Positions 12,901-48,567 of a stretch of 64,000 bases of DNA are shown piece by piece. The translations under genes were made by a program, and so were the position numbers. How positions within the stretch are numbered: the first letter of the stretch is position 1; the number at the start of each line of letters is the position of its first letter. The stretch comes from Bugula neritina (Eukaryota > Animalia > Bryozoa): the NCBI GenBank assembly GCA_964035545.1, contig OZ037767.1:10488581-10552580 (forward strand), in the 5' to 3' direction. The notes under the pieces were generated by a model. The model made no database searches and was not told where the DNA came from. It saw only the letters and a program-made list of their open reading frames with translations.

Positions 12901-15900
12901 AGCAGGTCATTCAACCTCTGCACAACGCTGACAGCGCATTCCTGGACCACGCTGTCGGAGATGGTGATGTCGGCATCCAGCACATCTCTGACAGAAATGA
13001 ACATACAGAGTATAGTATACAGAATGCACAGAGTATAGTATACAGAGTGTACAGAGTGTACAGAGTGTACAGAGTGTACAGAGTGTACAGAGTGTACAGA
13101 GTGTACAGAGTGTACAGAGTGTACAGAGTGTACAGAGTGTACAGAGTGTACAGAGTGTACAGAGTGTACAGAGTGTACAGAGTGTACAGAGTGTACAGAG
13201 TGTACAGAGTGTACAGAGTGTACAGAGTGTACAGAGTATACAGAGTAGAGTATGCAGAGTATACAAAGTAAAGTGTACAGAGTAGAGTGTACAGAGTAGA
13301 GTATACAGAGTAGAGTATACAGAGTATACAGAGTATACAGAGTAGAGTATACAGAGTATACAGAGTAGAGTATATAGAGTATACAGAGTGGAATATACAG
13401 AGTAGAGTATACAGAGTATACAGAGTATACAGAGTATACAGAGTATACAGAGTATACAGAGTATACAGAGTATACAGAGTATACAGAGTAGAGTATATAG
13501 AGTATACAGAGTGGAATATACAGAGTAGAGTATACAGAGTATACAGAGTGGAATATGCAGAGTAGAGTATGCAGAGTATACAAAGTAGAGTGTAACAAAC
13601 TACAAACTATAATGTAGTTGATAGTGAGATCATGCTGATTTGAATTAGCTAGATATTAGATAGAAATGCACTGGATATCCTGCCCTGTATACACATGTGT
13701 ATACGTTTGTATCTAGTGTGAGTTAATCAGTTCCAAAACATGGCTACTAGAATAAGCACTTTGCATAAACAAGTATGTACAGAGTATACAAAAAAGTTAG
13801 TGTCAAAAAGATATAATTTTCACTAGCCATGAAGTACCAACCATTTTACACTTGAAGCTGTGCAACAAGTACAACTACCTTTCTGTATATCAAGCACTAC
13901 TCGAGGTTATCTATATACCATGTACTACTTGAGGTGGATGACCTACAGACTCAAGACTATGACTTGACTATGAGTATTTACTTGAAGGGGTGAGAGTCGT
14001 CTCCCGAGTGCACCTTGGCAACGACAAACTTGACAACTCGAGCAGTGAAGGCGATGATGAGAGAGGTGAGCAGCAGATAGGACACGACTGAGATGATGGA
14101 GTAGGAGGAGATGGAGAGCAGTAGTAGCATCAGCAGAGAGAGGACAACTCCAGTCACTCGAGGGTCTCTCCACAGCAGTACGTCCCACACTGAAACAGAG
14201 TATACATGAGTATAGTAGATATACAGAGTATAGTAGATATACGTGAGTATAGTAGATATACATGAGTATAGTAGATATACAGAGTATAGTAGATATACAG
14301 AGTATAGTAGATATACATGAGTATAGTAGATATACAGAGTATAGTAGATATACAGAGTATAGTAGATAGACAGAGTATAGTAGATATACAGAGTATAGTA
14401 GATATACATGAGTATAGTAGATATACATGGGTATAGTAGATATACAGAGTATAGGAGATATACAGAGTATAGTAGATATACAGAGTATAGTAGATATACA
14501 TGGGTATAGTAGATATACAGAGTATAGTAGATATACAGAGTATAGTAGATATACAGAGTATAGTAGATATACAGAGTATAGTAGATATACATGAGTATAG
14601 TAGATATACAGAGTATAGTAGATATACAGAGTATAGTAGATATACAGAGTATAGTAGATATATATGAGTATAGCAGATATACATGAGTATAGTAAATATA
14701 CATGGGATTGCATCAAACTATGTGTACTGACTACTCCATAATGCATGATTTATAGTTAGTAGCTAGTAGTGAGTATAGAGTAGTGAGTATAGAGTAGTGA
14801 GTATAGAGTAGCTAGTAGTGAGTATATAGTAGTGAGTATATAGTAGTGAGTATAGAGCAGTAAGTATAGACTAGGTGGTATAGGGTAGTTAGGAGGTCAT
14901 ATAACTTTATTAGGTCAATAGAGTTAGATTGTATAGGCTATAAAAGCTTCCAGAAAGCTCACAGGCAGATGATGACTGGATGCGATGCACTCACTGTGCT
15001 CGTGATTGCATTGGAATACCATCATAATCACAAGAATAGATAGAAATCCGCTGATGGCAGCAGCACTGAGTGAGTCATCAATCATTCAAGGCAGCATTAC
15101 CGGACACGCGGCACTGCTAGCTTGCGAGTTTATAGCTGTGAGAAACAATTATTATTATTGACTTGTGAGCCACAGCTAGTGTAGTAATAACCTAAGATCT
15201 GCGCATCAAAAGGGGACTATACCCCAGCCCCCACTTAGATGCTGTCATATGTACACTAGACATACAGGACATGTGCCGAGTACATCTATAATATAAACTG
15301 TGCTTCAGTGAGCAAATCCCTCAGGACTCCTTCTTTCAACAGGCCTACTTTTAGTAAACTGGTTTTATAAAAATCAATATATGAATCAAATAATTCAAAC
15401 ATTGAGCACAAATCTAGAGTTTTCAAGTAGCACATGCGACTATCTTTATAACCCAGTGCTAAAGTATTGAGTACATCCACTGCATTTAGCAGCAGCAGTG
15501 ACCTAGATCTGGTACTACAATCACACACACTGCAAGTGGCAGGAATAACTGGCTTTCAGATCTTGAGGATTGGTGAACCACCTTATCTACATACTGCTAT
15601 AATGCACCCCACCCCATAAAATTAGCATAACACACTACTTATTTGTGGTAGTTAAAACATCTACTTTTGAAAGACTGAATTTGTACAGTGAAGGGGTGGC
15701 ATTGCAGCTATATACCAGTATGTATGTATTATATGCTAGCCAATTATATAAGCAGTATATCTATCCAATAAGTTGTATACATCAGCTAGACAAACATTGC
15801 ATGTATTTTATCCTCCTTCCCTAAGTACTGTGTAGTGTAATATATACTACACGTGATATAAGTGATATATTACTGCTGTACAGTGTACACCCGTGTTAAA

Positions 15901-18391: not shown

Positions 18392-19563
18392 GTCTAACTT
18401 TTTAAACACAAGCAGTAAATTGTCACATAAAAATTACCTACAGTGTCTAACTACTAAACAACTACAATCGCAAAGACGGCGAAGTCTATTATATTAGTAT
18501 TACTGTTGCTACAAGTACAAGCTTCAACTTTTGAATTTAAAAAAGTTATTGGAACCTTGACCTTAAATTAGAATCGGCGAAGACACAATTCGACGTTCAA
18601 AAAACACTTTTAAAATGAAACATAATAAACAAATAATAAAATTTATCAAAATAAATTTATTAAACAAATAAATGATTAATAATTTTAAAAAGCAAAGCAC
18701 AAAAACATCACGCACTAAAATTGTAGAACTAAATCTTTTTAGCAGACGTTGTTGTTCCGGCAGTCGTGAGATTTAAGGATAAAACTGGAAGCTCCTAGTC
18801 CTACTCTTAGCCTAAAAGTAAAAATAAATCTTTCTTTAAGCTTTATCCATTATTTTGCTCGCTCAGAGTAAATAATAAATATACTACAAATAAATTCACA
18901 ACGGTAGACTTTTAAATAATTATTGCAGTTTAATAGTAAAAACCGGTGAAATAGTCTTAGTCTTAGTAATAGTTTTTAGTTTACCTATGGCTATAAGTAT
19001 AACTAATAACTATAAGTATAAGTATACTGATACTCATAATCATAATCACTTTATCATAATGATATAAAATTAAATATTCATATTGAATTATGAACTGTAT
19101 ATTAATGTATAAATATTTATTAATTAAAAATATACTATTAGTATTACATTTACTGTCTATTAGTATTAGTGATACTGATACACTAAATCTAATACTACTA
19201 GTACTACTAGTACTACTACTAGTAGTAGTAGTAGTATAATTTCTTGATTGATAATCATTTAAAGTTAATCAAGTAATCACTATTAGTATTACTAGTCAGT
19301 AGACTAGTGTTAGTGTATAAGTATTATTATACGTGCTACCATCAGTGTTACAGTTACTATTAGTAAAAGTATTGGTTATACTAAAAGTAGTTAAATCACT
19401 ATTAGTAGTATTAACTAGTTATTTATAAGTATAAAGGCATAATGGTAATGGTTATAATTGCAGTGGTATTTATAGTGGTAATTGCCAATGGTAAATTAGT
19501 AGTTGTGGTACTACTAGTAACAGTTGACTGCATAGCACACTCATACTTCACTAATACTCCTTG

Positions 19564-28000: not shown

Positions 28001-31000
28001 GCAATCTTTTAATTTACACTAAATAGCCAATTACTTCGAGTTACTATTCCCTTTACCAATAAACTAAGAATTTAATTGCTGATAAATTCTAGTTTATCCA
28101 TTCTTTATGACCAAAGGATGGGCTGAAGAGAAACGTTCTGTTCGCAATGTATGATATCTGGTTGGCATTGTGTGACTGCGAAGATTGGATTATAACCCTC
28201 AACTAATCAGTATGTTTAAATGGCAAGCATTTTGTTATCCAATTAAAGCAAGAAGATATTCTTCTGGAAAATGTAATTCACAATATGCTTTGGCGCTGAG
28301 CTTCAGAACTGGCACTAAATTAATTTATGGCTGATGTTTTAACTTGTTGTTTAAAGTTTGCATTATCACTGCACGTTGCAAATCAAATCTCAACTATCCA
28401 TGACAAGAAAATAGACCATCAAACTAATCACTTCACGCTATTTTCAGATTCAAATCTTAAAAATGGTAATGACCTTGTTGTAAATTAGCACAATAGCACG
28501 TGGTATAGACTGCATTCCATAGACCATCTTGCTATTTATAAACAGCAAATTTTCTCTCAGTGGTCCTCACAATATCAACAACATACTGGTGTCAAGGGTG
28601 CAGTTTGGCTTACCAAGTCGACCTATTATTATGAATGAAAATGCAATGTGTTTGTAAGAGCATTTGACACATGTGAAAGATAACATCTACGATAGGAAGC
28701 TTCCGTAATTTCTCAACCCATTTTAGTTTAAATGAGTACAATTTTGCGATGAGCTCTCGATGAAACGCATTTGTTGAAAATATGCCTATGTTAAAATTTT
28801 TTTAATATGCTATTTTGTCAGTTTTTACTGCTTCAGTGAAATAGTGAAATATTTTTTACATTGTCTGAGAGCTGTATGTAATGATTACTTATTTTCAAGC
28901 AAACTAAAAGTTGCCTACACTTATTAATTATAAATATTTGTAACAAATATAGACAAAGTATTAAAAAAGTAAAAATAAAAAAAATTCATAAGATGTACTT
29001 CAAAGTTGCATCTTGAGCATTTAATTGCATAATTATACTCTGCATTTTAGTAATAAAACATATACCAATTATGTAATAATAATAAAATGTATAATGATAC
29101 AATATATTATGTTAATTACTATGTTGTGCCAATTCAAATCTCACATTGTTCATGGTATGAAACTATTGATCATGTAAACAAACATGTCACTTAAAGCCCT
29201 TGTTTGACAGCAAAAACAGGTTGTTGATGATTCTTACCTCCCAGATTTGGTTATAATCATTTCAGTTCCTAGATCATGAAACTTTTTCCAAAGTTCTTTC
29301 ATCTCCAGAGAGCAGCAACTTCTGCCAAGACTCTCTGAAGTTCTACACTTCTCTTCTGTAATTAAATCTACAAAAATACTTAGAAAATAAGTCTCTATTC
29401 AAATATTCGCATTGATATATGAAAGTTATATTTGCATTGATAATATTTATGCTTCTTTTTGTGATACGCCTACACAGTTTTGAACTATTTTCGAAGTAAT
29501 TTACTGTAGTGTTGAGGGGCAATCACAACACTGCCTTTGCTTAAATATTTTACCATGTATCAAGTAATTTTTTCAACTTTTGATGTCAATAAACAGTTTG
29601 TTTGTGTTGTTTATAAATGAAATTACTAGTTTTCAACACCTGCTCTGTAATTTGAAATTATATTTTCCACATGTTACTCACATCTACATTAATAAAACAA
29701 GGCTCTAAAACACATAATGCTGAGCAAATTGTATTATCTAATTCATGGCTCATCTCACCTCAATGCATTGCATACCAATACTCTCACGAAGCATAAAACA
29801 CTGTACTGTAATTAAAATAACATCATCAGCTGAGACCAGAACAGAATGCTGCAGAAATAGCCTACACCACGCTGGTTGCAGGTAAGAAACATTTAGACCA
29901 CAAGGATTGTTGTGAATCAACCTGCACATTGGCTATAGCCTAGATAATTGAATATCTATTGTTGTTTAACAAAGCAATTAGCTTCGGTAATGACCATAAA
30001 AGTTATTTAATTAAAAAATAGTCACCCAAGCTAGGGAATGTGTTAATAATATATATACATACATGTCAATGTGTCACTATATATTTGTAAAGGCTTAAAC
30101 AGTGGTAACATTTGGCTCCAGCAGACACAGAAATAGCATGAGAAATTTCAAGCTAGTCTAAGTGTCAAAAATTTACAAATACATAAAAAGCCAGTAGTGA
30201 CACATTTAGGCATTTTTTGAGCTACACTATTGATGCTGCATTCCTTAAACCTTTGAAACATACTCACATAGACAAATTAGAATGTATCAAATATTATATA
30301 CAATTTATGTTTTAAAACTCGTGTTGCTTAAATATACATGCAAAAGCATAAGAAATGCCAGCAATTTTAATATTCATTTTAATTTTAATTTTTTTTCAAA
30401 TAACTTAATTGAATATAACAAAGAATGAAGTTGATTTCTTATGAAGATGAAATATGCAATTCTATCTGACTTTACAATACAATATATTGGTGGAAGTATG
30501 TAATATAAATATAAAACTTTTGTAAAAAGACTACACAGATCTAACATTAACCTTTCACTTTTTCCCTGAAAATCTTCAGGTTTTATAGGTTATTTAAAGT
30601 TATAACAAGAATTCCATAAAGTTTTTACTTTATTCAAGTTAATTGCATTTTAGCAAATATTCTACTATGGCAAAAATATTCATATTATACACATAATATT
30701 ACATAAATATATTATACTGTTTAAATTACAATACAATATTCTATAATATAATAGAAAATAAATAATTCATACACCCATACTTACATAAATTTTGGCAAAT
30801 TACTGACACAGTTGTACAGCAGTGTTAACAAGTGCTAATTTTCTGTATAGCCTATTGTCAGAACATTATATTATTTATATTATATTATATTATATTATGT
30901 CATATAATATCATATTGCATGATATTATATTATAATTCATTACACTAGATCATTATATTTTTCTTTATAAAAGTAAAAGTAATTAAAGGTTGTATGCTAT

Positions 31001-33292
31001 ATATTAGAACAAAATTATAACAATGTGTCGTATTTTATGCTGTGAACAAAGACAATTGGATTAAAATGAAAACTCTTTGCCAACCTTTACTCCCTGATTA
31101 TAGCCGATGATTCTTTATTCTCAAACTCAAAGATGTTGTGAGAGGTTGATTTGTTTATTTATTTAAAGGCAGCATCTGACACTGAGCTCTAATCATCGAG
31201 ATGTGTGTTTAATTTTTATTTGTGTATAATATACAATGTTTGAGCACTAGACATTTCCATGTAGCAACTCATTAAATAAACTTCATTCACAAACTAATGA
31301 GGGTGTCAATTTGAATCTATTTTCTGTAGCAGCTCATTACATCGATGCATTTAGGGCAGCATATACTGGCAGCAGAGTTCACCTTTATCCAATCTTACAC
31401 CAGATACTTAACTTGTCTAGCTCTACGTGTTATAATTTACTGTAACATTACAGCTGCAGACTTTTTGGTGGCAAGAATAATCTATTATAGCTTTTCATGG
31501 CGGGACAGTTCTATATTATACGCTGCAGTTGTGAGAAATGTATACACATGGCATATATGCACGCTACACATCAGTCGCTGTAATATAGGAAGCTGGCTCG
31601 TGCTGCAGAGCTGCTGTTTAACTTATCGTCTCGGCATAAACTAGTTGCTTATAAACATTTTCTAGACTGTGAAATATTATCAATAGACTCAGAACCTAAT
31701 TGTTTCAAAAGCAAGCACAGGCAGGCTACTAGCCCACCCTGACATATGTTATTAAAGTTTTTATAAACACAGCTAAGAGATAGATTTTCATGAGACTGAG
31801 TTGACAGGCTTGATCACAGCTAGCGACACTAAGTGTAAACATTAGGATGGGAATATATATCATGTTCTCGTGTTATTAGTGCAGTGTTAATAATTGTTTT
31901 ATGTTGACTTCCCTTCATCTATGCGGTCACACATTACAGAGGGATAAATAACATTAGCAGTATCTGTCAGCATTTATTATCACTGTAGCTATAAAAATTC
32001 AACAACCACAAAAGAGGGCATTACAAAAATATGCCAAAACATGCAATGAGTCTGATTGCTAAAGTTCGAAAGCAAATTTAAACTTATAGTATAATAAAAT
32101 ACTGGTACCACTATAGCTTATTAGCCAGGGTGCAGATAAATACAACATACTTTTGCTTTAATTTTTTTTATTAAATAAGTCATGACTTAGTAGCAGTATA
32201 GTCATACTGTACTGTGTAACTTTTATAGTACTATCCTTATTCTATAGCTCAGTCGTTATGGTTATTTAAAACAGCAATTAATATTTTATTATATTATTAT
32301 TATATAATTATTGCATTTTATCTAGTCTGCAGAATTTAGAAAGTATGTGATTATGTCACAGATTTATCTGAATCCAATAACAAATAATCAATAGTCAATA
32401 ATATGAACATAAACCGACTAAAATCCTGATTGGTCTATCAAAAATATTTATGAAACTGCAAATTAATTTAAATACTTACTGAATAACACTGAATACAACT
32501 AATACATAAATAAACATATGTATGTCTTGCACACGGCATGTATATATTGTAATACTACATAACTATGTTAGATGTGCTTAAGGAGAATAAATTAGTATGG
32601 TAAACCATAGTTGGAAATTTTCTGCCATAATCTATAATTATATTAAAATATGCAATAATTTATGATGCTTTATATATTATTATTTGTTAAAATATTGCTT
32701 GCCATGTTATGTTTTACAGCAATGCTATTCGAGCCACCCCTACTGAGCCACCCCTATCAAACCATCTCTACGGGCCAGCCCAGTGCATATTTATTTCTGG
32801 ATTTTAACACACACAGCGGAGCTTAGAAGTAAAGCTAGAATATGTTACCATATAGATAGAAAAACAGTGTTCCCATGTGTTTAGTAAATGTAAGCCATAC
32901 CTTCAGTGATTGGGGGTGAAGGGAGGGGTGTCTCTGAACTCAAAGATCTAGGGCTAGACCGGCTGTCTTGTTCAACTTTTTCTCCTTCTGCATCGCCCAG
33001 TCCTTTGACCTAAAAACATGACACTAACAGTACAACTGCGACGTGAAGAATGCTATGATGTGTGTACATATAGAAATTATGCTTTAATTATATGGTTGCA
33101 TTTATACTCCTTGTCCTATGAATTGTTAAACAGGATGCAGTGTATAGAGTTTACCTCATCCCCGTCTTCACTAGCAGAATCTGCTGGAGAAAGCAGAGCT
33201 TGTATTGAAAAAGCTCGAGCTTTTCTCGACATTGGAGAAGCTTTCATTGAGAAGTCACTAGTTGGAGTAAATTCATTCATTACTTCTTCCAT
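25073..33292 (-). CDS. TBX20: T-box transcription factor Tbx20 (H15/midline subfamily), about 408 aa; exons 33155-33292, 32901-33009, 29238-29367, 26960-27124, 26484-26592, 25814-25981, 25494-25686, 25073-25287; probable 5' UTR exon with donor near 33799
   Basis: N-terminal eh1 motif [14 protein letters not shown]-box [28 protein letters not shown]...[21 protein letters not shown]...[10 protein letters not shown]...LNSMHKY...[26 protein letters not shown], followed by the Tbx20-typical [20 protein letters not shown] and YQNQL are diagnostic of Tbx20. All phases are consistent (one GC donor). Confidence 0.93.
26593..26701. repeat. Three ~38-bp tandem copies that include the Tbx20 acceptor sequence (TACTGTAG on the minus strand)
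   Basis: CTACAGTA..CACTAATACTA.AA.TACTGTA repeated three times. Confidence 0.75.
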
Positions 33293-34083
33293 TTTCAATT
33301 TTCTCTAAAATTGGAAAAGTATTGGTAAAATATTTGATAACATTTCAAATGTAAAATATTTGATGGGTCTTAAAACAAACTCGAATTTGAGTTTTAGTTG
33401 TACAGTTTAAAAATAAGAAAAAAAAATTAATTTGTATATTGGAATATTTTTCATGTGCACAATGTTAGCTAAGCAATTAGCAAAATAATGAGATATAATT
33501 CTAACATATTTTACACCGCTGTTTGGAAAAATAAGTTATTGCATAACCTACTTAAAGTGATTACCACTATTGGGGGGGGGGGGAGGGATACAAAAAGCTC
33601 AAAGAAGCCAAGAGCATTTAGATTATTATTGGTTAGATTAAAATATGTAATAACATTGTAACCTGTCAGTTATAAATTATACTGAATACTGCATTTAGAT
33701 TTAGCAGCAATGTAATATAAATACCTTCATATATTAATACTTATTCTAACCAATGATTACTGATAAAATGGTGTAGAGATATGATGAAAATAATCTTACC
33801 TGTTACCTGAGCAATATATCTGTTGAGTTGTGCAGAACAATCTGGTATCTTCAACTGACGTGCAACCTTGAAGACGAGTGCTGTGACAGTGTGCCACACT
33901 CTTGAACTTGACTTATTAAACCCCCTGCAGGACCCACAAGTAGTGGTTAGCAGCTACCTGAAGTGATAAGTTGTGTTGATGGTGTGAATAACTGAGATAA
34001 AGCCTGCTACCTTCATACATGCACATAGCCTGAGGCCAGGCCAGGTATAGACAAGTTATTGAACTATCTGTTGCAGCTTCCAG

Positions 34084-34132
34084 CTGATTGGTCAATTAAT
34101 TTCTAGTAAACTGGGAGGTCTTGTCCTATTGG
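34084..34132 (-). promoter_or_regulatory. Pair of CCAAT boxes upstream of the putative Tbx20 first exon
   Basis: CCAATCAG (34091-34084) and CCAAT (34132-34128), about 300 bp upstream of the first-exon donor. The TSS is not mapped. Confidence 0.3.
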
Positions 34133-36113
34133 CTGTCTTAGCTAACTAACTTTTCATTAATAGTGACAAAACAATTGTTGTGTCTTTTTATTGTCAAGTT
34201 TTAATTGAACTTTTCAGATCAGAAAGTTTTAAAGATACAAAAATAGTGTTTAATTAGCCAAGTTATAATATAGCTAGAGTAAAAATTTTACCTTTGTGTG
34301 GGAGGAGAGGAGGGGGGATTTCTAATAAACTTATAGCAGATGTTGCAGTCATCTTTGATTACATTGTTTTAATAGAGTTTATGCCTTGATTCGATGACTG
34401 GTGGTTTGATTGGTAGACTAGCGTCATGCTTAATTGTGTGCAAGAAAAATAGTCATTTCTACAAATACCAGAAACATTGCATGTCAAGATTATCAACACA
34501 AATAGAATGGTGACAGATTTTAGCTAAATAAACTGCCTATCTACACTTTAACCCCAACAATGTAATCAAATACACTAGCACCTGCCTACAAAAACTAGTG
34601 TTTTTCTTAACTATCCTCTTCATTAGGATGTTCCACTGCCAAGCCTCCAATTAACAATTAACTCGTTAACATTTATGCTTTAGAATCTGAAGGTATAATA
34701 TTGTGTCATTGAATGTTTATTGTTATTAATTTTTTAGAATAAGTTTGACAATGATGATGGTAACAGATTAACTATCCCAAAATATTTACTGTATAATACT
34801 TAGCTACTTGATGGTTATCAGATCACAAAAATGTGCTATTTTTTAAAAAATGACTAATGAGTGAGATTGTACATAATATAATGTAGATTTTAAACTATGA
34901 TATATTAATATAATCATCAATAATATGAGGATATGATATAATGTAACTATAAATAATACAATAATATAATATAAAAACAAATTGTTATTTGCCTTAGTTC
35001 AAAGCTCAAACCTTTCAAACTTTTTTGAGGAACCTTTACTTCTTAGTTCGAAGCTATTTAAACAGTTGCATTGGTAAAACTTAGTTGATCTGAATTTAAA
35101 TTAAAAGTATTTTAATAAATATGAGACCTATAATAGTCATCTAAGTATTCTTAATTTCTACCCAAAATAATAAAATACATATGAAAGGCCGTATGAAAGG
35201 CCCTATGGAAGGCGTAGGTTGTTACCAACTGGTGATGACAGGTTTGGTCAGCAATTAAACTATTTTTCAAGCAGCGTTGGTTCACCAATTGGCCTGCAGT
35301 GGTATGTTGGTAGTCCTTATTTGTATGGGTGTGCTCAAGATAGTACCAATGCCCTTTAACCCTCAAACATAATTTAGTTGTTTCTCTTTAGAGGTTGACA
35401 AATTACCCCATTATTTGATAGTTAAAATTTTGCTGACCACAAATTGAGTGTGATAGAGACAGTAGGCAAAGTGTTGACTGGGCTAATTCTTGAATCACAG
35501 TGTTCCTACAACAACTGGTATATTTTACTCTAATTACGCACAAATAAACAATTACCTTTTAAACTGACAACAATGTGACAAATCTATTTATTTGACAATT
35601 ACAATCAATTGAGCTTTATTAAAACCACAAATTGAAATATTTGACTAGACAGTGAAATTTTCAAGGCAAGCTTCTTGAAATTACTTGACTCTAGGCTATC
35701 CACTTAGAAATTAAACGATTATAGAACACTTTACTGCTACGTAGGTTTTTGCTTTAAGCAGTTTTCAAATGTGTGCATCAATTATATTCATTAGCATGGA
35801 TCAGTTTATTTTCTTTATATTTGGTTCAAAGCAAAAAATATTCTAAACAAGCACTTGTTACTTCATGTTAAAGAGAATTAGCTAATTGCTGCTATAGCAT
35901 ATATAGCATAATATACGGTATAAAATACATATTATATAATATATAAAATAATACACTATGTATGATATATAAAACATAATATGCAATAAGTACGATATAA
36001 TATAGTATATGCATACACAGAATATGTTATATATTGTATTATAATAAATAACATATTATGTATAGTACACTATATGTAATTTAAATATATCTTCACGGGC
36101 TAGCAATTTAATA

Positions 36114-36286
36114 AAAAAATAGGTAAACGAGAAACGTTCTATTTTTACTACCTACTTTATTAATCAAAGTAAGCTGACATTTTCTACACCGCATGCAGTG
36201 TCCATCTTCAGAGTTGTGAAATAAAATAAGTTTACTTTAAGTAATACAGTAATAAGAATAAAATGTTTCTCGTTTGCCTATTTCTA
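36114..36286 (-). mobile_element. Penelope-like pLTR fragment with inverted tail and a degenerate minimal hammerhead ribozyme (36173-36213)
   Basis: Inverted repeat AAATAGGTAAACGAGAAACGTTCTATT / AATAAAATGTTTCTCGTTTGCCTATTT. The minus strand reads CTGAAGA-TG-GACACTGCATGCGGTGT-AGAAAATGTC-AGC, followed by AATAAA. Confidence 0.55.
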
Positions 36287-37365
36287 ACTACATGTAATAT
36301 ATTACACAAATACAGTAATTCTCTCATTCATAGACATTCACTGCAATCTATGATCTGATGCAGGGTCTGCCCCTTTTGATACATGCTCCAACCTTTCTAA
36401 AATACGCAACATTATCAAACTATTATCTTAGTCATTCTTAAATATAAAACTGTACTTATTAACTGTAATAGTATGTTTAACTTATTTTATCTCATTCAAA
36501 CAATGTATACTATCAATTAGTTATTCCTTCAGCCAGTTTTTAACAAAGTTTGCACTTGGCCTGGACTCACAGCCACTGAGTAAGAGGTGCTAGGAGAAAA
36601 TCTTAGTGCCATAATGCTACGAAATAGTTGATACAATTGGAGTAAGAGCACACATTTGTTTATGTATCTGTTTTAGTACAAGGCGCCAACTCGACACTAT
36701 GTTTAAAACGAAACTGGCAGACCAGTGTTTGATGAGTGAGCGGTAGTTGTACTTGTGTTATTACTGCAGTGGCTACTCTCCTGTATACACTTTCATTAAA
36801 CAAAGTTTACAGCCTTCCAAGCTACTTACTGGTGGTAAAAAACAATGCACAATAAAATAGATGCTAAAAAGGCTTATGTTTTTATCTTTAGAAATTTAAC
36901 AAAAACCTAAATATTTCGATGCAGTAATATTTCATTGTTCAAACAAAGGCTAGCGGAACCTGTATGCTGCTATAATGAGACAATTTAGAGTATGTTAGCA
37001 GCTAATTGCGAATCATAAGAATGTGGATGTAGTCTAAATAAATACATTTGATTGTAAAAGATAGATTGTATGTTTTATTTATTAATCATTTAAACCAGAA
37101 ATAGTACAAATATTTTTGCCAAAGCTGTTATAAAAAAATGTGTTGAAATACAGCAAATACAACAATACAACAAATACAACAAATACATATTCTATAGCTT
37201 ACTACCACATGTAGTTATTGGGAACTATGCACCTATTATTATACTATACAATGCATTATATTACAAAGTTATATGACACAGTGCATTATATTATATTGTT
37301 ATGTCACACAACGCATTACATCATACTATTATATGCTACAATGTATTTGGTTATATCATTAATGT

Positions 37366-37368
<3 letters not shown>

Positions 37369-37404
<36 letters not shown>
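37369..37404. repeat. (TA)n microsatellite
   Basis: About 18 perfect TA units. Confidence 0.95.
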
Positions 37405-37407
<3 letters not shown>

Positions 37408-37899
37408 CAGGCTGACTGTATGTCTATCTCAATATTATTAAACATTTGAATATGTTAATAAACACTTCAGAAAACAAGTTTTTTATTTCTACTTCTCAAA
37501 AAAAGAAATAGTTCTGGTCAAATAGATTGGTTACCATTTTACTTCCAATTTCTAAAATAGAATATGAAGGATTATTACTATTTTCATGTTACAGCGAATG
37601 TATAGGTTTTTACATCCATCTATATATCTATATAGTTTATTATAGACCCTGGTTTCAACATACAGCTAAAACTGCAACAATTAATATTAGGTTTTACTGT
37701 AGGAAAACACAAATGCATTTTTTTATTTTGAAACTTTTGTGAAATCTCTATAATGTCTAATATAAACTTTAAATTGGTTGTAGTATTATAAAATTTGAAA
37801 AGGTTATAACATTAAATTTCAAATATAATTTAATAAAAATATAATCATAGGAATTTAAATATTTGCACATGACACCCCTATCAGCTTTTGATTTCGAAG

Positions 37900-39852
37900 T
37901 TACAGGGCAGAGCTAGGTGTGGGAACAGATGGAGAGATGGAAGAAGCTGTAGAAAGAGATTCCTGTGATTGATTGTAAATGGCGTCTGGTGTATGTTTAT
38001 TTTGATATTGATGATTCTGTGATAACAAACTAATGACCGTGGAAAGTATTTGTTGATTTGATGACTGAATTCTCTTCATTGCTTCGTCTAAGTACAATTT
38101 CATATCTTGATAGCATTGCTGTTGCATTTCACAATAATAAACAAACTGTGACAATTGATTATAAGGAATGCTGTCAGTCGTGTAGGTGAGAGGGTGAGAA
38201 GAGCTGCCACCAAATGGATCTCGTCCTGGTGTGTCTGGTCCTGTAAAACATAGCATAAATGCTAATAAATTATTCACATAATGCCAATACCTACTAATCA
38301 GAAACTCCTGGTGCTAGTGGAAAAGAGACAAGTTCTTTTACACCAAGGCAATACAATGGAGATGAAAGAAGTAAAATAATTAGTTTATGTTTTGTTTATG
38401 TCAATAAATCAAACAATAATAAACATACTGCTTTGTTTGATGTTTAAGTAACTGATGATTTTAATTACTTGGTTATTTGACAGGATGTTGATTCAGATGG
38501 GTGGGAGCTACTAGCTGTTATAGTTGGTTTCAAACCCAGTGCCAGCAAGAATTTTTTAAAGTTTTATTGAAATAAATATTTTCTATATTCCACTTTACTG
38601 AAGTGTTCGTTGACAAAAAGGCTATATTTTGTTACTTAGACTCTAAGTGCAATGTGCTGAAATTTGTATACTTGGCATGTAGTTCACATGAACTAGTTTT
38701 ATATAAACAAACAATAGCACATTGTAACAAATGACTTCCGGCTCAAAGTACAGAAAAATAAGAATACAACTCCTCAAATTGATGCTCACCCAAATAGTAA
38801 AAGCTTGGAGGAGATAACTCTTCTTGAAAATAAGTTGACTCTCCATTGATCCCTGCAGAGTTCTACAACAAAAAGCCTATTGTGTAATTTTACTAGACAT
38901 CATTATTATAACATACAAATGGGGCTGATGTGCAGATATCCAGATACCAGAGAAAATAATTTCTCTTCAACTTATAAAGGACAGACAACTCCTAAAGTAA
39001 TAAAAATATTATTTGTCAGATTGTTAAAATTTACATTGTGAATTCGCTAAACAATGCAATAAAACACGGATTACTAAAAGGATAGCGAAAAAATTCTGTT
39101 GTCAAACTAGTAAAAAGGACAATGATATATCTAGGAATAATTGGAGTTACTGTTATTTGGAAAGACAACTACTAACATGAAGGTTATTTTATTAGAATTT
39201 GACAGTTAAGAAGGAGGCTAAACTCAGCTCTCAGACATGGTATCAAAAGTAAAAATAATTATATAAAAATATGTCTATATTTTACTACTAAAATTGCTAT
39301 AGCTTTACAAAAGATGTAATTATGAAAAATGAAAAGCACTCTTTAAAAAATATTCTTTCTTATTCTTTAGTAAATTACAAGCTGGTTGTTTTTATATTCT
39401 AAAAATTCTAAACGGTACAGTTACAGGAGCAAATCAGAACAAAGGAGAGCATCAAAATATAACTTTCCTGCTTCTTAGAATTGATATTAAACTGTAACTT
39501 AGAATTAGCAGCTAGGAGACCGACAGCTTTGACTTGAAAAAAATTTGTTATAATGTTTAGTTCTAATGTAGCCACTTTAGTTTAATACCTCAGTTATATT
39601 GCAGCTGTTGCTGTATTGCTGACGTACATGTATACTGCTGACACTGTCACTGCTGCCTTTGTGCTTGCAACTGTTTCTATGGCTGTCTGGAGACAGCAAC
39701 GCATCTATAGAGAAAGCAGTAGCGTTGACTGATAGCCCCAGGTCATGCTTAGTCTCCTGGGTTGAGCTGAGGGACGCGTCTCTCTTCTCCTGCTTTCGTT
39801 GTTTCTTGGAGCTGACAACTCCAGATGATAGTTTTCTTTTCATTTGCTGCAT
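37900..39852 (-). CDS. T-box-less eh1-motif protein, about 225 aa (probable truncated Tbx20 tandem paralog); exons 39589-39852, 38790-38862, 37900-38240; 5' UTR exon with donor at about 41320
   Basis: Exon 1 has a basic NLS-like stretch KRKLSSGVVSSKKQRKQEKR and LSVNATAFSIDALLSP (eh1). It is followed by a 73-nt phase 0-to-1 exon (tag|AAC...TTGG|gtgagc) and a phase-1 terminal exon open for 112 codons to TAA, with a possible coiled coil (YQDMKLYLDEAMKRIQSSNQQILSTVISLL). No T-box exons were seen between 34000 and 39600. Confidence 0.65.
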
Positions 39853-40910
39853 TCTACAATCAAACAACATTTAGAAAGTAGATCTAAACTATAGTACACA
39901 TACTTAATTTGGAATAAAATATAAACTAATACATAATATTTACTTATATTAAGCTATAGCCGCTTAATAATGTTGGTATGGGAAGAATTAGGATATGTTA
40001 AATCATTTGGCTCAAGCTATTGCAGCTGCTAACTGTGAGACAAGCATTTATTGATTGACACCAAATCAATAAATAATAATATATTAATATATTAATTTTT
40101 TTTAGATCCCTGTTATAAGATCAGTAAAGTTTGCCAAAGGTACCGTATCTCACAGGCCTACAGGCAAATGAATCACACAAAGACATGGTAATAATAAGCA
40201 GGTGTGAAATAGTTTTGGCAAGAAATCACAACAAATAAGATAACCTAAATTCTTATTAATTATAAATTGATTCAATTATTTTAAACATCACATTAAAAAA
40301 TGTAGCTAATTTTAGGATAAAATATAGCCAAATATATGTTATAAACATTTATATTATGGCCAAAATGGGTCTCATTGATGATTTCCAGTGAAATGCCAGA
40401 TGAAAAAGCAAAATTTAAATTTATTATACAATATTGCAAAGGTAATGAAATTAGCTTCATCATAAAGGGATTTAAATTATTTATTTGTAGAAACTATACT
40501 ATTTAATAAACAAAAGTGCATTACTATACTATTAAAAAGCTTTAATGATATATAGTATTACTTGAACATCGTGTAGTATTACTCTGATATAAAACCATAT
40601 TATTCTGATGCTATTATATACAGTATTACACGAATAATACAAAGCATTTTCTTCTAATGCTTATTTGTTAAAACTGTAGCTCAAGATAGTCAAGTGAAAC
40701 TTTAGCTGCTGACCAAGTTGTTGATTCAAACTGATATAATATCATTCATGTACTTTCCTTTACTTACTCCATAGTAGATATATTATATAACAAACTCTCT
40801 AGAATATATTGATCTATGTACACGTTATTGACAGCATACTCTACACAATACCTACAGTATGATCTATAAATACATTTTATATACAGCATTTCATACATAA
40901 ATTCTCTCTA

Positions 40911-41272
40911 ATATGCTCTACACTTTATCTACAATATATTCTACACTTCATCTACGATATATTCTACACTTTATTTACAATATATTCTACACTTTATCTA
41001 CAGTATATTCTACACTTCATCTACAATATATTCTACACTTCATCTACAGTATATTCTACACTTTATCTACAATATATTCTACACTTTATCTACAATATAT
41101 TCTACACTTTATCTACAGTATATTCTACACTTTATCTACAGTATATTCTACACTTTATCTACAATATATTCTACACTTTATCTATAGTATATTCTACACT
41201 TTATCTACAGTATATTCTACACTTTATCTATAGTATATTCTGCACTTTATCTACAGTATATTCTGCACTTTA
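40911..41272. repeat. Minisatellite, 23-bp unit ATATTCTACACTTTATCTACA(G/A)T (about 15 copies)
   Basis: Directly visible tandem array about 50 bp inside the intron from the 41320 donor. Confidence 0.95.
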
Positions 41273-41546
41273 TAATCTACCACATAGACTAATAATAACA
41301 TCACACACTAACTTCCTTACCTGTCATCAGATTTAGTTGCATTAATGAACAGCTCTCTAAACGCCACACTAACTTATATCCCGGAAGAGGCAGCACCTTT
41401 CATCATCTGGCTTCATCAGCCAATAATATTGTGAGCTGACCTCTCTTCAGCTCTCTTCATATGAGAATAAATATTAACCATTAGTAATTTCAACTGCCTG
41501 CAATGTTTTAAGAATCTTTTAATTTAATTCTACCTCAAGCTGTATG

Positions 41547-41580
41547 CTGATTGGTTGTTGGTACCTGAAAGGTGATTGGC
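41547..41580 (-). promoter_or_regulatory. Pair of CCAAT boxes upstream of the eh1 gene first exon
   Basis: CCAATCAG (41554-41547) and GCCAATCAC (41580-41572), about 230-260 bp upstream of the first-exon donor. Confidence 0.3.
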
Positions 41581-43454
41581 TGCTCTGGATAGTGTTGGCT
41601 TCAATGGATAGCATACTTATGAGCTTTATCAAAGCTTATGAAAATAATATATGTAATACTAGTTCAACATAACTGATAAGTGTATAAATATTTAGATGAT
41701 GTTATCGTTATACTAATTTATGTGACATAAAACTGTCCTTGAAAATAGGCTTCAGAATCTGAGAAATATTATGCTTACCTGAGGTGAGATTAAACAAGCT
41801 CTGAGCCCTGAGGTATAATTACTTTCAGCACTGCAATTTTGTAGCATCGAAATGTTACTATTCAAAATTAATTCCTGGTATGGTAGCTAAACAGCACACT
41901 ACAGATATGAATTATCATACTTTCTAAGATTAACAATTTCCGAGTGCGAATATACTCACAGAACTGTTTCCTGTTACTGCTACTGCACTTTAGCTCATTT
42001 GTGTCGTTGTTAAGATTGCAATCGCTACTAGCTGCTATTGTACCTATATCTAAACAGACAGCATGTTGTAAACAGACATGCTTATTTTGTTGTTGTAGCA
42101 CTTTTGTTTTGGACGCAGTAGCTAGGATCTGACTTTTTATCCTCAACTGGTGCCAGGTTGTTTAATATTTGAAAGGAGGCACTTATGTATTTGAATGAGG
42201 CAGTCATGTTGTGCAGTTAGCTTTGAGAAGAATTGATGAAGTACCAGAGCACCTTGCAGAAACCTGTAGAATGTATTCGAGAGGTGTCATGTTATGATTG
42301 TACTCTACAGTGCAAGTAAATATAACATCATCACTTATGCTATTCACTAAATTAATTTTAAAAATCACATTTATTTTTAGCATTTTTTAGTCTTTTTCAT
42401 TCTAGTTATATTATGTTTAAATATTATATTATGGTATACTATAATATATTTTATTATGTTATACTATGTATTGCATTATGTTATATTATCTTATGTTATA
42501 TTATATTATATATGATTTCTATGACACATTATATTATATATGATTTCTATGATACATATAGCTTATACCCTGGGTTGACTGACAGCATTGTACTGTATGA
42601 TTTAGTTTCATATATTAAAATATAATTTATGGCACAATGCCATTGAGCATAGGTTGAAATAAAATATTTCATTTTACCAAATTGGACATATCTTTTGGAG
42701 TATAACAGTAATTATGTGTATTTACATGCAGCAGAATATTAAAATTAACCACAAATTAATATGTAACAAGGCCACACGAGTGAATAAATGTATTTGAGGT
42801 TAGAAAGGGATCCCTAAAAGTCTAGCCTACTTCACAATCATTCAAGAAGCTTCTTTAGAAAAGTTAGCAACAAATACTTCTAATTAAGGCAATTATATAG
42901 ATTGATTTGCTGGTCTTTACAATTCACTGCGCAGTCTGACTCTCAGTTTCAACCACTAATTCACCATTTACCTTGAAATACTTGACTTCAAGGCATTTCA
43001 ATTTCTAGCTTTAACACAAGCAGTGGTAAGTTTTACAATACTTTAAACAATGGAATTTCTGTAATCATATAACACAATTATATACTTGAAGTTTAATCGT
43101 TTGTGAACAGATATTTTTTGTACAACTTAATTGGATAGTGTAGTCTCTGCATTTCGCATTAATAGACTTAAGTTTAAAACCAGTCAATTTTCCTGCGTTT
43201 AAGAATTTTTACTTTTAGAGTAATTATATTATTTTAATTGCTGCGGAATGAAAACAAAACACGTGAAAAGCTACATTTTGCAAACAAATTTTCATAGTAA
43301 GCTTTATAGTGGTTCTGTTACTTTTCACAAACTTAACTGAATAGTAGCCTATACATACTAAATAAAACTTTTTAGTTTAAATTTTATAACTTTTGTATGC
43401 AATGGCAGTTCAGGAGTAATGTTTCAACAGAAAATGTAAGTTGATGCTGTAATA

Positions 43455-43800
43455 CAGGGCTGTCCAGCAGGCAGTTTCAGTTTCAGAGCCAGATGTGGCC
43501 TCCAGCCTACATGTATGTGGCCCCTAAAGGCATTACAAACAAAAAAAGTTAGTACAAAGATATGATTTAGAGTTAAAAACCCTCTTTTAAATGTCTTATT
43601 TATATGCAGGCTACAAAATATGTAGCCTGCAGTAATTATTGCAGGACTTCATTGTGTAATGATACATAGAAATTTGGAACAAAGTAAATTCAAAAATACT
43701 GATGCGGTAGCCCCAGCTCAAGCTAAATCTCTCAAAGTGGCTCTCGCCACGGAACATTCCATCTTAGTGGATCTCGCTCTAAAAAAGTTGGACATCCCTG
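43455..43800. mobile_element. hAT (Charlie/MER58-like) MITE
   Basis: TIRs CAGGGCTGTCCA / TGGACATCCCTG, subterminal GTGGCC/GTGGCT motifs, and an imperfect 8-bp TSD CTGTAATA vs CTATAAAA. Confidence 0.75.
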
Positions 43801-45221
43801 CTATAAAAAGTCTCCAGTATCAGTCAAGCTCAAAAGGGATACACTTAGGAAGTTCAAGTTTTAATTAAGTAGCTTCAAATTTAGTGGACAAGCAAATTTA
43901 TAAAAATATACTAGAAGTTGGAAAGGAAAACAGGTCTTGGGTTTTGATTGTTTCATCTCTTCTTTCCATTAAATGTTGCAAATAAATACAATGCTCCCTC
44001 CATATCTCACTGATCCCTGTCTCATGAAATCCCATAGATCACAAGAAGGTTTTATACCCCTGCTTTGTGGCTTGTGTGTGTGTATACAGAGACATAGTGG
44101 CCAAATTTAACATAGGACACAGCAGCACATTATTGGTTGATTAAACACAGAGATGGCACTATTTTGATAATAAACAACCACATTAAAAAATGTCTAGTCC
44201 ATGAAAACTTTGTCTTCTAAAATTAAAAAAAAAAACAACTGCAAGCAACTTCCAAGCCTGTGTTTTATGTATATCTATGGTTTCTAGAATTTCATAAGAC
44301 AGTTAATGCTCATGCAAGTGCCATTTTCTTTTTGTTTTAAAACCATACTGATTAACTTAGTAGTGACGGAAATGAGCAAAGGTTTCAATCTTTAATCATT
44401 TTTCAGTTTTGTAGCAATGCAAAGCTTCGAAAGCTAGAAACCTGGGTAGAAAAGGGTTTTCAAGCAAGCTAGCCATGCTTTCTATTGTGGCAATGGAGCA
44501 ATTGTGACCTAATTACATGCTTAACTGCATCACCAGTGACCTTTACTAAAATTTGAAATTCTCATCTTATGTTTGCTAATTAATCAGTGCTCTAACTTTT
44601 AGAATTTAGACTATAGCTGCAGTATAATAATTCTGCAGTAAATGTATTATTGTAAGTATTTTGTTAGTTGTATTGTGTTGCTTATAGTGCAGTAAAAACG
44701 AACACTTTACATGACAACCCATAAACTTGATGGTCAAATCTGCCAAAAAAATCTGACTATATATAGCCAAATATATAATATATATCCTTTTGTATTACTA
44801 TATTTTAATTGCTGCATGTCCTATTGTTATATATATTATATTTGAAGTACATTGAAAACTGGCATTGCTTTTAGTCTGGAAAAGATTAGGTGATGATTAG
44901 TCATCGCTAATTGCAGAACGGAAAATACTTAGCTAATAAAAAATTGTTTCTTTCAGCTTTATTTGGATGAGTATAATCCTGATTCTACTTAATGTTTTGG
45001 CAATATTTTTAAAACTTTTGTTATCATTTTGTTGTGATACATAATAATTGTCTATAAAATTACTGCTTAACTTCATGTTATTGATTTATATCGCATAGGA
45101 AAGGTTAAATGTAGATGCAGGTCCATGATTAACTATACTCACATAACTGTTATAACACAATAATATCCGTATATTAAGTAATGCAGTTGCTATGTAGGGG
45201 GGGGGGGGAGGGGTATTTTAG

Positions 45222-45325
45222 AAGAGTGTAGCTGATAAGTGTATAAAAGGAGTTGTAGCTGGGAGCTTAGCTGGGGTGTAACTGAAGGGGTTTAGCTGAA
45301 GAGTGTAGCTGAAGGGGTGTAGCTC
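45222..45325. repeat. Degenerate ~15-bp tandem repeat GAAG(G/A)GTGTAGCT
   Basis: Several imperfect copies visible. Confidence 0.65.
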
Positions 45326-45974
45326 ATATATGAGTCGAAATTACAATTTTGTCAAATAATACTAATTCTTGCATCACCATCTCAACATAAGAAGTTGTTT
45401 GATATAAGCCCTACTTAAGTAAGAGTCTACATTACCACAGCTAGAGTGATAGATTATCCAAGCAAGATGACTAAATCAATATTGCTAGCAACAATTGCTA
45501 ATTTCCTTTAATTAACACCTTCCTTATTCTAATCACAAAAAAACGACACAGATATGATAAAATTTGAATTTTAAAATAAAAATAGTTTTTAATGTTAGAC
45601 TAAATTGTTCAGAGTTGTCTTCACTTCTTCACAAAACAAAAGTAAAGCAACTTTACATAGATGGCCGAGAGATGCCTAACATGTGTTTAGATTCAGAAGC
45701 TTGATAGTTAAGCAAGCAGCAGGTGAACAACACAAACAGTATTAGTTATAGAACTGAAAAAAATAAACTATGCTTTTTGTGCCTAAATTTAAATATATTA
45801 AAGCGTAACACTATAATACACATAATACTAATATACACTTTTTATGTCATCCAATTTTATCATAATTATAAAATTAATTTGATAACCATAAAGTTTTTTG
45901 CTTTTGAATGCCATTGTCTAGACTCTAGACTCTAAGCTATATTGAGCATGCACGCATGCACTAGACATACTGGT

Positions 45975-46331
45975 TGCTTTGTGTTAACTTCAGCTAGATA
46001 AGCCTGATTAAACTAGTGCGAATTTCTTGATGATGATTTCTTGATTTTACTTTGTGTCTATTAAACACTGTTTGATTAACTAAAATAGTTTCAACTTTGC
46101 TTGCAGTGCACTTTGACTCAATTTACAAAATTGAAGGTTGCAGAGTATAATAAATAGCATAGAAAAAGTACAGGGTAGAGTATGTATTTTTGCGTTGAAT
46201 TGGTTTCGAGTGCACAATTTCTGTACAGATGTTCTGTATTTTGATTTGTTACGTTTTTGTGTCTGGCTTAGATTACAGTTTAGAAGATGTCAAACTTTAT
46301 TTAAAACATCTCCTAAGACTAAAGCTTAGTA
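45975..46331 (+). pseudogene. Inverted partial duplicate of an intron plus exon start of the Sec14-domain gene
   Basis: TTAGATTACAGTTTAGAAGATGTCAAACTTTATTTAAAACATCTCCTAAGACTAA (DYSLEDVKLYLKHLLRLK) and the preceding intron-like sequence match the reverse complement of about 51082-51465. Confidence 0.8.
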
Positions 46332-46594
46332 CAAAGGCATACAGCTAGTGTATGGAAGACCACAGCACTAAAGATGGCTATTTGATGCATAAGACTTCAT
46401 GAATAATGTGAACCACCTTTTGGCTATTTATAGCATTATGTTTTTATAGGCAGTTTTTTGTTGGATGAAAAAATAATATAATTTAATTGCATATAATATG
46501 ACATATTGATGTTTTTCTAATTACAATGAGGAATATATAAGTTATATGAATTAACATATTGCAGATCCAATTGGCTTCTAACTTGATTCTCCTA

Positions 46595-47583
46595 ATATGA
46601 ACTATGCAGTCAGGAGGAGACAATATGTGTAGCACTAGTATGAGTTTGGCAATATGAGCACCATAAATATAGCAGCACCAGCAAAAGGGGTGATAACAAA
46701 AACAACAAAGTGTTTCTTTACACTTATACAAATTACCTGCAAAGGCAAATGACATAATAATGCTCCAATATGATGGTACGAATTTGCATCCACATCACTC
46801 TGCTTTCTAACTTTTGATTGCATGGAATTTTTAACTGGATTATTTATCTTCTCTTGCTATTGCATGCATAAAGAGGGCACAACTCTATTTAAGTAAATCT
46901 AGCTGCATAAATATTGTAAATATTATAATGCATTCTTAAGTACAAAAAAAGTATGCATGTGAGAGAAAGAGTGAATTGTTCTGATCAGCATATGGAACTT
47001 TTGTATATGGATATATAGAAAAAGCTTGATAGAATGTGTTAGGGTGTGCTAGCCCAGGATCTTAAACGACAGAGCACCACCAAACAAATACCCTAACCCG
47101 GAGTCCTAACTTTCCACTACAGATTGACAGGAGCTAGAGTTATCTCGCATATAGGCCAAGCAACCCGTCTCAAAGGACCAACCCCGTCCAGCTAACTTAT
47201 AAGCTGCAGCATAAAATTATTCGGTAAGCTCAGAATTAACTCTAAAACTGCGATTTCAATATAACACTTTTAGTTCATACTTGCTGTGACACATCTGCGA
47301 ATCTGAAAATATTTGCAACATGCAAATATATTCGGTTATGGTTCGGCTCATTCTAATACGTCAATGATACATTATTCTATTATAAGTTACTTGTACTGTT
47401 TTAGCAAGTTTTTAATAACTTATGGCCTTCATTTGCTTTATTTTTGTCAAAATAGTGTATTTACTATATGACAGCAACATATACTAACAGTTATATCTAT
47501 TTTTATTCCTGTAACGGGTGCTGCTATAGCTATATAAGCTCTTATTGCTATACAAATTATCTCCTCCTGACTGAATAGTCCAC
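46595..47583. mobile_element. Old element bounded by degenerate ~80-bp inverted repeats
   Basis: ACTATGCAGTCAGGAGGAGACAATATGTGTAGCA...TATAGCAGCACC (about 46600-46679) matches the reverse complement of about 47517-47579 (ACTATTCAGTCAGGAGGAGATAATTTGTATAGCA...TATAGCAGCACC). Confidence 0.5.
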
Positions 47584-48567
47584 AATCTTGGACAGCTTTT
47601 TCAACACATTTTTACCTTCAATTGATTTGCCTACTTGACCCCAATCATAACTTTTATTAAACTTTTTAGCGAGTTTAAATCAGTGAAGAAAAAATATGAA
47701 AGACTCAGAGTGGCTTCCATGTTTAGCATTTTCAGCAGGAAATGACATCATCAAATTTCTTGCAAGTCCTGCATGTTGTATTATATTGTTTTTATTATAC
47801 ACGTTATCACTACATGTCAAAAGAATTATAACCAACTTCTTATTAGCAGACATAAAGTTTGCGGTTTCTAAAAATAAAACACCATATATCAAATAAAAGT
47901 GTTGGAAGTTACTTTATCAAAAAACTTGGATACTTTTTTATATAACATACTTTCAATAAGACTAGGTATATATATTATTTACTTGGGATAACTAAATAAA
48001 GCAATATTTGGATTTACAATGATTTGCTTCATGTACTTAATATATTGCGCTCTTGCTGTAACTGATCCAGTTCTAATACATATTTTTAAAAGTTAAACCA
48101 AAAAGAAAGACGCCCTGGAGTTGAAACTATTGATGACATTGCCATCGTCATCTTCTTCTATTTTATACACATGGTTCAGTCTTTCCTCCATAGTACTAGC
48201 TATCCCAGCTTTAAACTTCACTGTGCGTTTATGTCTAGCACCATTACTGGTGAAAGCCATGCTATCTACAAGTAAATCAACTTGTATTAACATACAGTCT
48301 CTTGCTTTATGCTTGCGTTTTAGCAGATAAAATGGGAATACAATTTAAATATATCTTTACCGGCTAGCAATTCAATTGTGAATAAGTATACAAGAAACAT
48401 TTTGTTTTTATTACTTTATTAAACAAAGTAAACTACTATTAATACAATTTAACATTCAACTTGGCCGATCTATCCTAGCCAGAATAATTTCAAGATATAT
48501 CTAACTTTGTACTCATAGCATTTGAATTTTTAACTGTTACAATATGATATCAAAAGATCAGCTCACA

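Follow-up and report, generated by a model that had tools for sequence, protein, structure and literature searches.

A small eh1-bearing gene next to a T-box gene in the bryozoan Bugula neritina, a possible derivative of its neighbour and a predicted Groucho adaptor

A separate protein-coding gene, real, expressed and constrained, and found so far in the Bugula-type lineage only, lies on the strand of a Tbx20-type T-box gene and 4.4 kb upstream of it, in the genome of the bryozoan Bugula neritina (assembly GCA_964035545.1, contig OZ037767.1). It was studied in a stretch of 64,000 nucleotides (positions 10,488,581 to 10,552,580 of the contig, hereafter the window, to which all coordinates refer), which is AT-rich, with 33% G+C. 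As read from its sequence and from structure models, the product would consist of three constrained modules, namely a stretch resembling a nuclear localization signal (NLS), an eh1-type motif embedded in predicted disorder and a 56-residue amphipathic helix with a heptad pattern, joined by fast-evolving linkers. Taken as a whole, the evidence gives about an even chance that this is a separate gene derived from the T-box gene, encoding a nuclear adaptor of the co-repressor Groucho. DNA-binding-free co-repressor adaptors, such as Ripply and Hairless, decide between activation and repression by a transcription factor; to our knowledge few of them have been described, each from genetics in model animals, and the present gene would be a candidate adaptor in an understudied phylum, indicated by sequence alone and with a readable origin.

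The small gene spans 37900-41441 on the minus strand and comprises four exons, one 5' non-coding and three coding. An initial annotation of this DNA had proposed an intact open frame of three coding exons and about 225 residues, some 4 kb upstream of the T-box gene and on its strand, and this holds: the coding exons (39852-39589, 38862-38790 and 38240-37900) have AG/GT borders and join into an intact frame of 225 codons. Exon 1 (41321..41441) is 5' untranslated and ends with the donor GACAG/GTAAGG; exon 2 (39589..39853) starts with an ATG at 39852, provides 88 codons with a phase 0 end, and carries both the NLS-like stretch and the eh1 motif; exon 3 (38790..38862, 73 nt, phase 1 end) encodes a fast-evolving linker; and the coding part of exon 4 (37900..38240), which includes the stop codon at 37902-37900, is followed by a 3' untranslated region (37677..37899) with an AATAAA at 37727-37722. 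Immediately upstream of exon 1, the promoter region (41442..41620) contains two CCAAT boxes and one inverted CCAAT.

This structure is that of spliced contigs of 797-864 nt, with a k-mer depth of 157-188, recovered from four public runs belonging to two studies. The contigs show both junctions of exon 3, at 38239/38789 (equally 38240/38790) and 38862/39589, and the 864-nt contigs of runs X3 and X4 join exon 1 to exon 2, through a junction read as 39855/41327 with 4 bridging letters, which, with the sibling-lineage sequence around the donor taken into account, corresponds to 41321/39853. All three predicted junctions (41321/39853, 39589/38862 and 38790/38240) are thus present in the contigs. 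In the contigs the transcript runs from 41441 to 37677-37683, about 45 bases beyond the AATAAA; the end anticipated at 37700-37850 was near the mark, the real one being located slightly further. A retrocopy was considered as a source of the intron-less contigs, and is ruled out by the single genomic locus of exons 2 and 4: the search for paralogues in the 216,009,554-base assembly returned only the gene itself for these exons, and the contigs therefore represent mRNA. Two features of intron 1 can be mentioned here: a tandem array of roughly 23-bp repeats (TAGATAAAGTGTAGAATATACTG-like) at about 40930-41290, which sibling contigs match in several registers, and, at position 40200, one of the two exact T-box half-sites (AGGTGTGA) of the 64-kb window, which may be there by chance.

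Could these exons rather be alternative 5' exons of the T-box gene, giving a long isoform with a second NLS-eh1 leader, the 225-residue product being a truncated isoform with an alternative last exon? The location on the same strand, 4.4 kb upstream, would suit such an arrangement, as would the phase 1 end of exon 3, which is the phase of the sole in-frame donor of the T-box first exon, so that splicing from exon 3 to the T-box exons would stay in frame; a match of this kind has, however, one chance in three. Every spliced contig runs from exon 3 into exon 4 and ends past the poly(A) signal, and in the contigs of the four runs neither a continuation nor a loose end leads from the donors of exon 2 or exon 3 towards the T-box exons; the transcripts thus do not always splice on into the T-box exons. 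Moreover, the helix encoded by exon 4 is strongly constrained, which implies that the short product is no by-product. We consider the isoform explanation quite unlikely, though a live rival, and retain a gene of its own.

Selective constraint was assessed against a single sibling lineage, together with its RNA alleles. Exon 2 retrieved one protein in a word search, P0001, with 91% identity; its coding sequence lies on L005-L009, genomic contigs obtained from other samples and probably belonging to the Bugula neritina complex. Contig L006 aligns with positions 40952-37573 of the window with an overall identity of 84%, and retains all splice sites. Coding exons 2, 3 and 4 are identical at 93.2%, 94.5% and 95.3% of positions, each with 0 gap columns; the introns reach 76.4%, 77.8% and 87.2%, with 107, 73 and 19 gap columns, and the 3' untranslated region 92.4%. 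The ratio of nonsynonymous to synonymous substitution rates (dN/dS, Nei-Gojobori method) is 0.43 for the whole frame (p = 0.016) and 0.19 for exon 2 (p = 0.001): the frame is preserved in a relative, its exons are free of insertions and deletions, and its dN/dS is not near 1, a value that would have counted against the initial annotation.

The constraint is a mosaic. The basic stretch of residues 1-24 shows 0 amino-acid changes for 2 silent ones, the eh1 block (residues 32-62) 0 for 7 (p = 4e-5), and the helical block (residues 135-203) 0 for 3 (p = 0.005), which amounts to 0 amino-acid changes and 12 silent changes over the three blocks pooled, while the linkers and the C-terminal tail accumulate 23 amino-acid changes for 2 silent ones, and the 4 differences recorded in exon 3 all change an amino acid (the p-values of the blocks are those of regions delimited post hoc). 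Substitutions among the RNA contigs, which include at least two divergent expressed alleles, repeat this pattern. In the sibling lineage (L006/L007), the stop codon TAA is replaced by CAA and the frame gains 15 codons, which leaves the extreme C-terminus free to vary. Purifying selection is thus supported for three parts of the protein, namely the basic N-terminus, the eh1 block and the C-terminal helix.

Outside the frame, the CCAAT region of the promoter is 91-94% identical to sibling contig L005, most non-coding flanks being at 51-88%, and the upstream ATGs of exon 1 are absent from L005. A segment of about 500 bp located further upstream (42613-43112) is 92-99% identical to the same contig, for 51-88% in the neighbouring non-coding DNA; it holds no open frame of 30 residues or more and has no match in Rfam. 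Located upstream of both genes, at 1.2-1.7 kb from the small gene and about 9.5 kb from the T-box gene, it is probably a conserved regulatory element.

The NLS-like module is a bipartite basic stretch, KRKLSSGVVSSKKQRK (residues 5-20; 39793..39840, minus strand), that can be read as matching the classical bipartite NLS consensus. The basic, NLS-like N-terminus noticed in the initial annotation is thus recovered within the stretch of residues 1-24 that is invariant at the amino-acid level. The second module is the eh1-type motif AFSIDALLSP (residues 46-55; 39688..39717, minus strand), identified both by a pattern match in the genome and as part of a conserved block. Its residues F47-S-I49-D-A-L52-L53 satisfy the consensus F-x-I-x-x-[IL]-L and are identical in the sibling lineage. 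Exon 2 is predicted to be disordered, with a short one-turn helix on I-D-A-L-L (residues 49-53), which is the state expected of a short docking motif. The third module is the invariant helical block (37969..38175, minus strand), with a long helix predicted at residues 139-194 and a heptad pattern: in a single-sequence AlphaFold model, exon 4 forms one 56-residue helix, with a predicted local distance difference test score (pLDDT) of up to 93, followed by a shorter helix. In one heptad register, 12 of the 16 a/d positions are hydrophobic, a value attained by 205 of 20000 shuffled sequences. The helix predicted in exon 4 and the shuffle test agree with a coiled coil, or with some other interface between helices; the coiled coil suspected earlier in the C-terminus is, in other words, plausible and not proven, its helical part being predicted.

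What the protein is related to was asked exon by exon, with exons 2 and 4. Pfam reported no family as a match at E <= 1 for these exons, the only sub-threshold signal being Flagellar_rod (E = 0.033), and in particular revealed in them none of the DNA-binding domains usual for eh1 proteins (homeobox, forkhead, T-box or zinc finger) and no Ripply family; the T-box domain PF00907 was likewise not detected in the small gene, and the WRPW motif is absent from the 225-residue translation. With exon 4, no match was obtained in a word-index search of proteins of 62-196 residues, no neighbour in the ESM Atlas, and no relative in a scan of metagenome contigs or in a PDB sequence search.

Where does the eh1 module come from? 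The core FSIDALL of the small gene (39714-39694) has as its counterpart FSIQALL in the first coding exon of the T-box gene (33211-33191), both exactly where they had first been noticed. The resemblance of the two motifs, claimed on inspection, is borne out by alignment: 18 of 36 residues of exon 2 match the first exon of the T-box gene (E = 8e-6 in a single pairwise comparison), and this exon also ranks first, exon 2 itself aside, when exon 2 is compared with all six frames of the window (E = 0.006). The motif of the small gene equals that of its neighbour at 9 of 10 positions. A degenerate DNA pattern encoding A-F-S-I-x-A-L-L-[S/T]-P has only three matches in the 216-Mb genome and none for a reversed control, the number expected by chance being estimated at well under one, and two of the three sites, in exon 2 of the small gene and in the first exon of the T-box gene, lie 6.5 kb apart on one strand. 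The third match, on another chromosome (contig C2), sits in a hydrophobic, non-coding-looking context and was set aside as a chance match. Different synonymous codons are used at 4 of the 9 shared motif residues, and the two copies are therefore old, maintained at the protein level, and not homogenised by recent conversion.

With a near-identical motif on the same strand at a distance of 6.5 kb, and almost none elsewhere in the genome, a local partial duplication from the first exon of the T-box gene is the most economical origin; it is very hard to explain otherwise that two of three such sites lie so close together. This agrees with the partial tandem duplicate proposed in the initial annotation, an origin that motif identity and adjacency support well, and make likely rather than proven, the sequence shared by the two genes amounting to about 16 residues. 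No remnant of a T-box was found by tblastn of the T-box exons against 33400-48000 (best E 1.1), and none of the six T-box loci of the genome falls within the small gene, in line with the first description of the gene as lacking this domain.

A competing explanation is that of an unrelated young gene, whose eh1-like motif would be convergent, or would not bind Groucho at all, and whose conserved blocks would serve another function. Motifs of the eh1 type are short and recurrently convergent (PMC1310626), similarity to the neighbour is undetectable beyond about 16 residues, and the C-terminal exon is an orphan. Against this stand the match at 9 of 10 positions with a gene 6.5 kb off on the same strand, with a single other, non-coding-looking match in 216 Mb, and the low probability of a chance adjacency for an independent gene, estimated in our analysis at about 1e-4 per eh1 gene. 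Convergence thus appears quite unlikely, and derivation from the T-box gene is preferred.

How could such a gene have arisen, and what would its product do? In the scenario that best fits the modules, the eh1-bearing first coding exon of the T-box gene would have been duplicated locally and have captured unrelated downstream sequence. The predicted NLS would take the protein into the nucleus, where the eh1 motif would dock into the WD40 domain of Groucho/TLE, as that of Tbx20 does, and the conserved helix would pair with itself or with a partner. The protein would then be a DNA-binding-free adaptor, delivering Groucho to the partner of its helix in the manner of Ripply or Hairless, or, less likely, a competitor titrating Groucho away from eh1 factors, its neighbour for example. 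From duplication to the adaptor or decoy role, each of these steps is an inference from sequence. The genome does contain exons that match the Groucho/TLE N-terminal domain family. In mouse, TBX20 binds TLE via residues F18/S19 of its eh1 motif, a contact that is essential in vivo (bioRxiv 10.1101/2022.09.27.509637), and F47/S48 are their counterparts here.

A pure decoy would only titrate Groucho/TLE, its helix serving stability or oligomerisation. The combination of an eh1 motif and an NLS-like stretch without a DNA-binding domain would suffice for this role, and the high depth of the transcript in the runs would suit it. However, the motif alone is enough for a decoy, yet a distant block of 69 residues is invariant and shows silent changes only, which points to a further specific contact. 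Since constraint is as strong on the helix as on the motif, a pure decoy is the less likely option, and we regard it as unlikely. The adaptor, with two interacting modules, is the reading kept here.

Such a protein would find its place among known DNA-binding-free co-repressor adaptors and competitors, a Groucho-related function being plausible from its modules. Drosophila Hairless is an adaptor without DNA-binding activity, in which an eh1-like motif recruits Groucho and another module binds a DNA-bound partner. The layout proposed here, an eh1 motif and a separate partner module without DNA binding, is the same, but Hairless is much larger, also binds CtBP, is unrelated in sequence, and has a known partner, Su(H). 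MicroProteins (such as Id and LITTLE ZIPPER), as well as AES/Grg5, are short derivatives of regulators that hold only an interaction module and act by competition. The small protein would likewise be a short derivative, with an interaction module probably kept and no DNA-binding part; this module is nevertheless a co-repressor docking motif and not a dimerisation domain, and its 225 residues exceed the typical size of a microProtein. With Tbx20 and its homologues midline, H15 and mab-9, it shares an eh1 motif near the N-terminus, in a disordered region and near-identical to that of its neighbour, including the F-S pair used by mouse TBX20 for TLE binding (F18/S19; bioRxiv 10.1101/2022.09.27.509637; PMC1310626), and differs from them in lacking a T-box or any other DNA-binding domain, and in having an NLS-like stretch of its own, as well as a helical C-terminus unrelated to theirs. 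Finally, Ripply1/2/3 are small nuclear proteins, free of DNA-binding domains, that bridge Groucho/TLE to a partner transcription factor (PMC4178057). The Bugula protein is also small and without such a domain, and its nuclear location and link to Groucho are predicted, whereas the WRPW motif and the Ripply homology domain that characterize Ripply are both missing, and there is no sequence similarity.

Several points weigh against this reading as a whole. Derivation from a larger regulator is indicated by motif identity and adjacency, yet homology to the T-box gene is confined to some 16 residues, and convergent evolution of eh1 motifs is documented (PMC1310626). The blocks tested for selection were picked post hoc, so that their p-values are optimistic, and the extreme C-terminus is not constrained, as indicated by the loss of the stop codon in the sibling lineage. 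Both structure models were built from single sequences. A HMMER search with exon 4 among 1.84 billion representatives yielded 0 matches, in a library that does not contain this protein itself and thus says little on other bryozoans, and rarer isoforms splicing on into the T-box exons could escape the contig evidence.

A bolder generalization, which we put forward tentatively and hold as doubtful, is that an animal T-box gene spawned a linked regulator without a DNA-binding domain, which kept only the docking motif of its parent, gained a new coiled-coil partner module, and modulates Groucho repression by this parent or by other eh1 factors. If true, bryozoans would have evolved, on their own, an equivalent of Ripply or of a microProtein out of a T-box gene. 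Confirmation of the candidate adaptor itself would make it a clear example of a developmental regulator from which its own modulator arose, and would offer a handle on the use of Groucho in bryozoan development. Were the protein not to bind Groucho, what would remain is still a well-supported, constrained and lineage-restricted gene.

The neighbouring gene itself, as judged from its sequence, is a T-box gene of the Tbx1 subfamily that carries an eh1 motif near its N-terminus. Its first coding exon (33155..33292, minus strand, with a possible end at 33172) starts with an ATG at 33292 and carries the motif at 33214-33185, and its T-box exons, detected by Pfam and tblastn, are located on the same strand at about 29.3, 27.1, 26.5 and 25.9 kb. 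TBX1 is its closest solved relative in a PDB sequence search, and a word search with a T-box exon, completed by a cluster look-up, gave no names. The name Tbx20 used in the initial annotation is one that we presume from signature residues, and that no tool confirmed; an N-terminal eh1 in a T-box gene is what stands of this claim, the tools reaching no further than the Tbx1 subfamily. N-terminal eh1 motifs have been reported in TBX18/20/22 and in the TBX20 homologues mid and H15, marginally in TBX2/3, and not in TBX1/10 (PMC1310626). The best-looking donor of the first exon, GAG/GTAAAC (phase 0, within 33154-33175), does not keep the frame with either candidate acceptor (29345-29365), and a weaker one, GCTA/GTGAAG (phase 1), does keep it into the first T-box exon; the latter may reflect the true structure of the first exon, or an extra small exon may exist.

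Further along the window, the list of open frames contains, on the minus strand at 12813-14746, long frames made of short tandem repeats (YSV/LCT-type), which run into a segment resembling the beginning of a membrane domain of the reticulon type (WRDPRVTGVVLSLLMLLLL...). Between this reticulon-like region and the T-box gene, an open frame of 317 residues (17456-18409, minus strand) is acidic and serine-rich, with no obvious domain.

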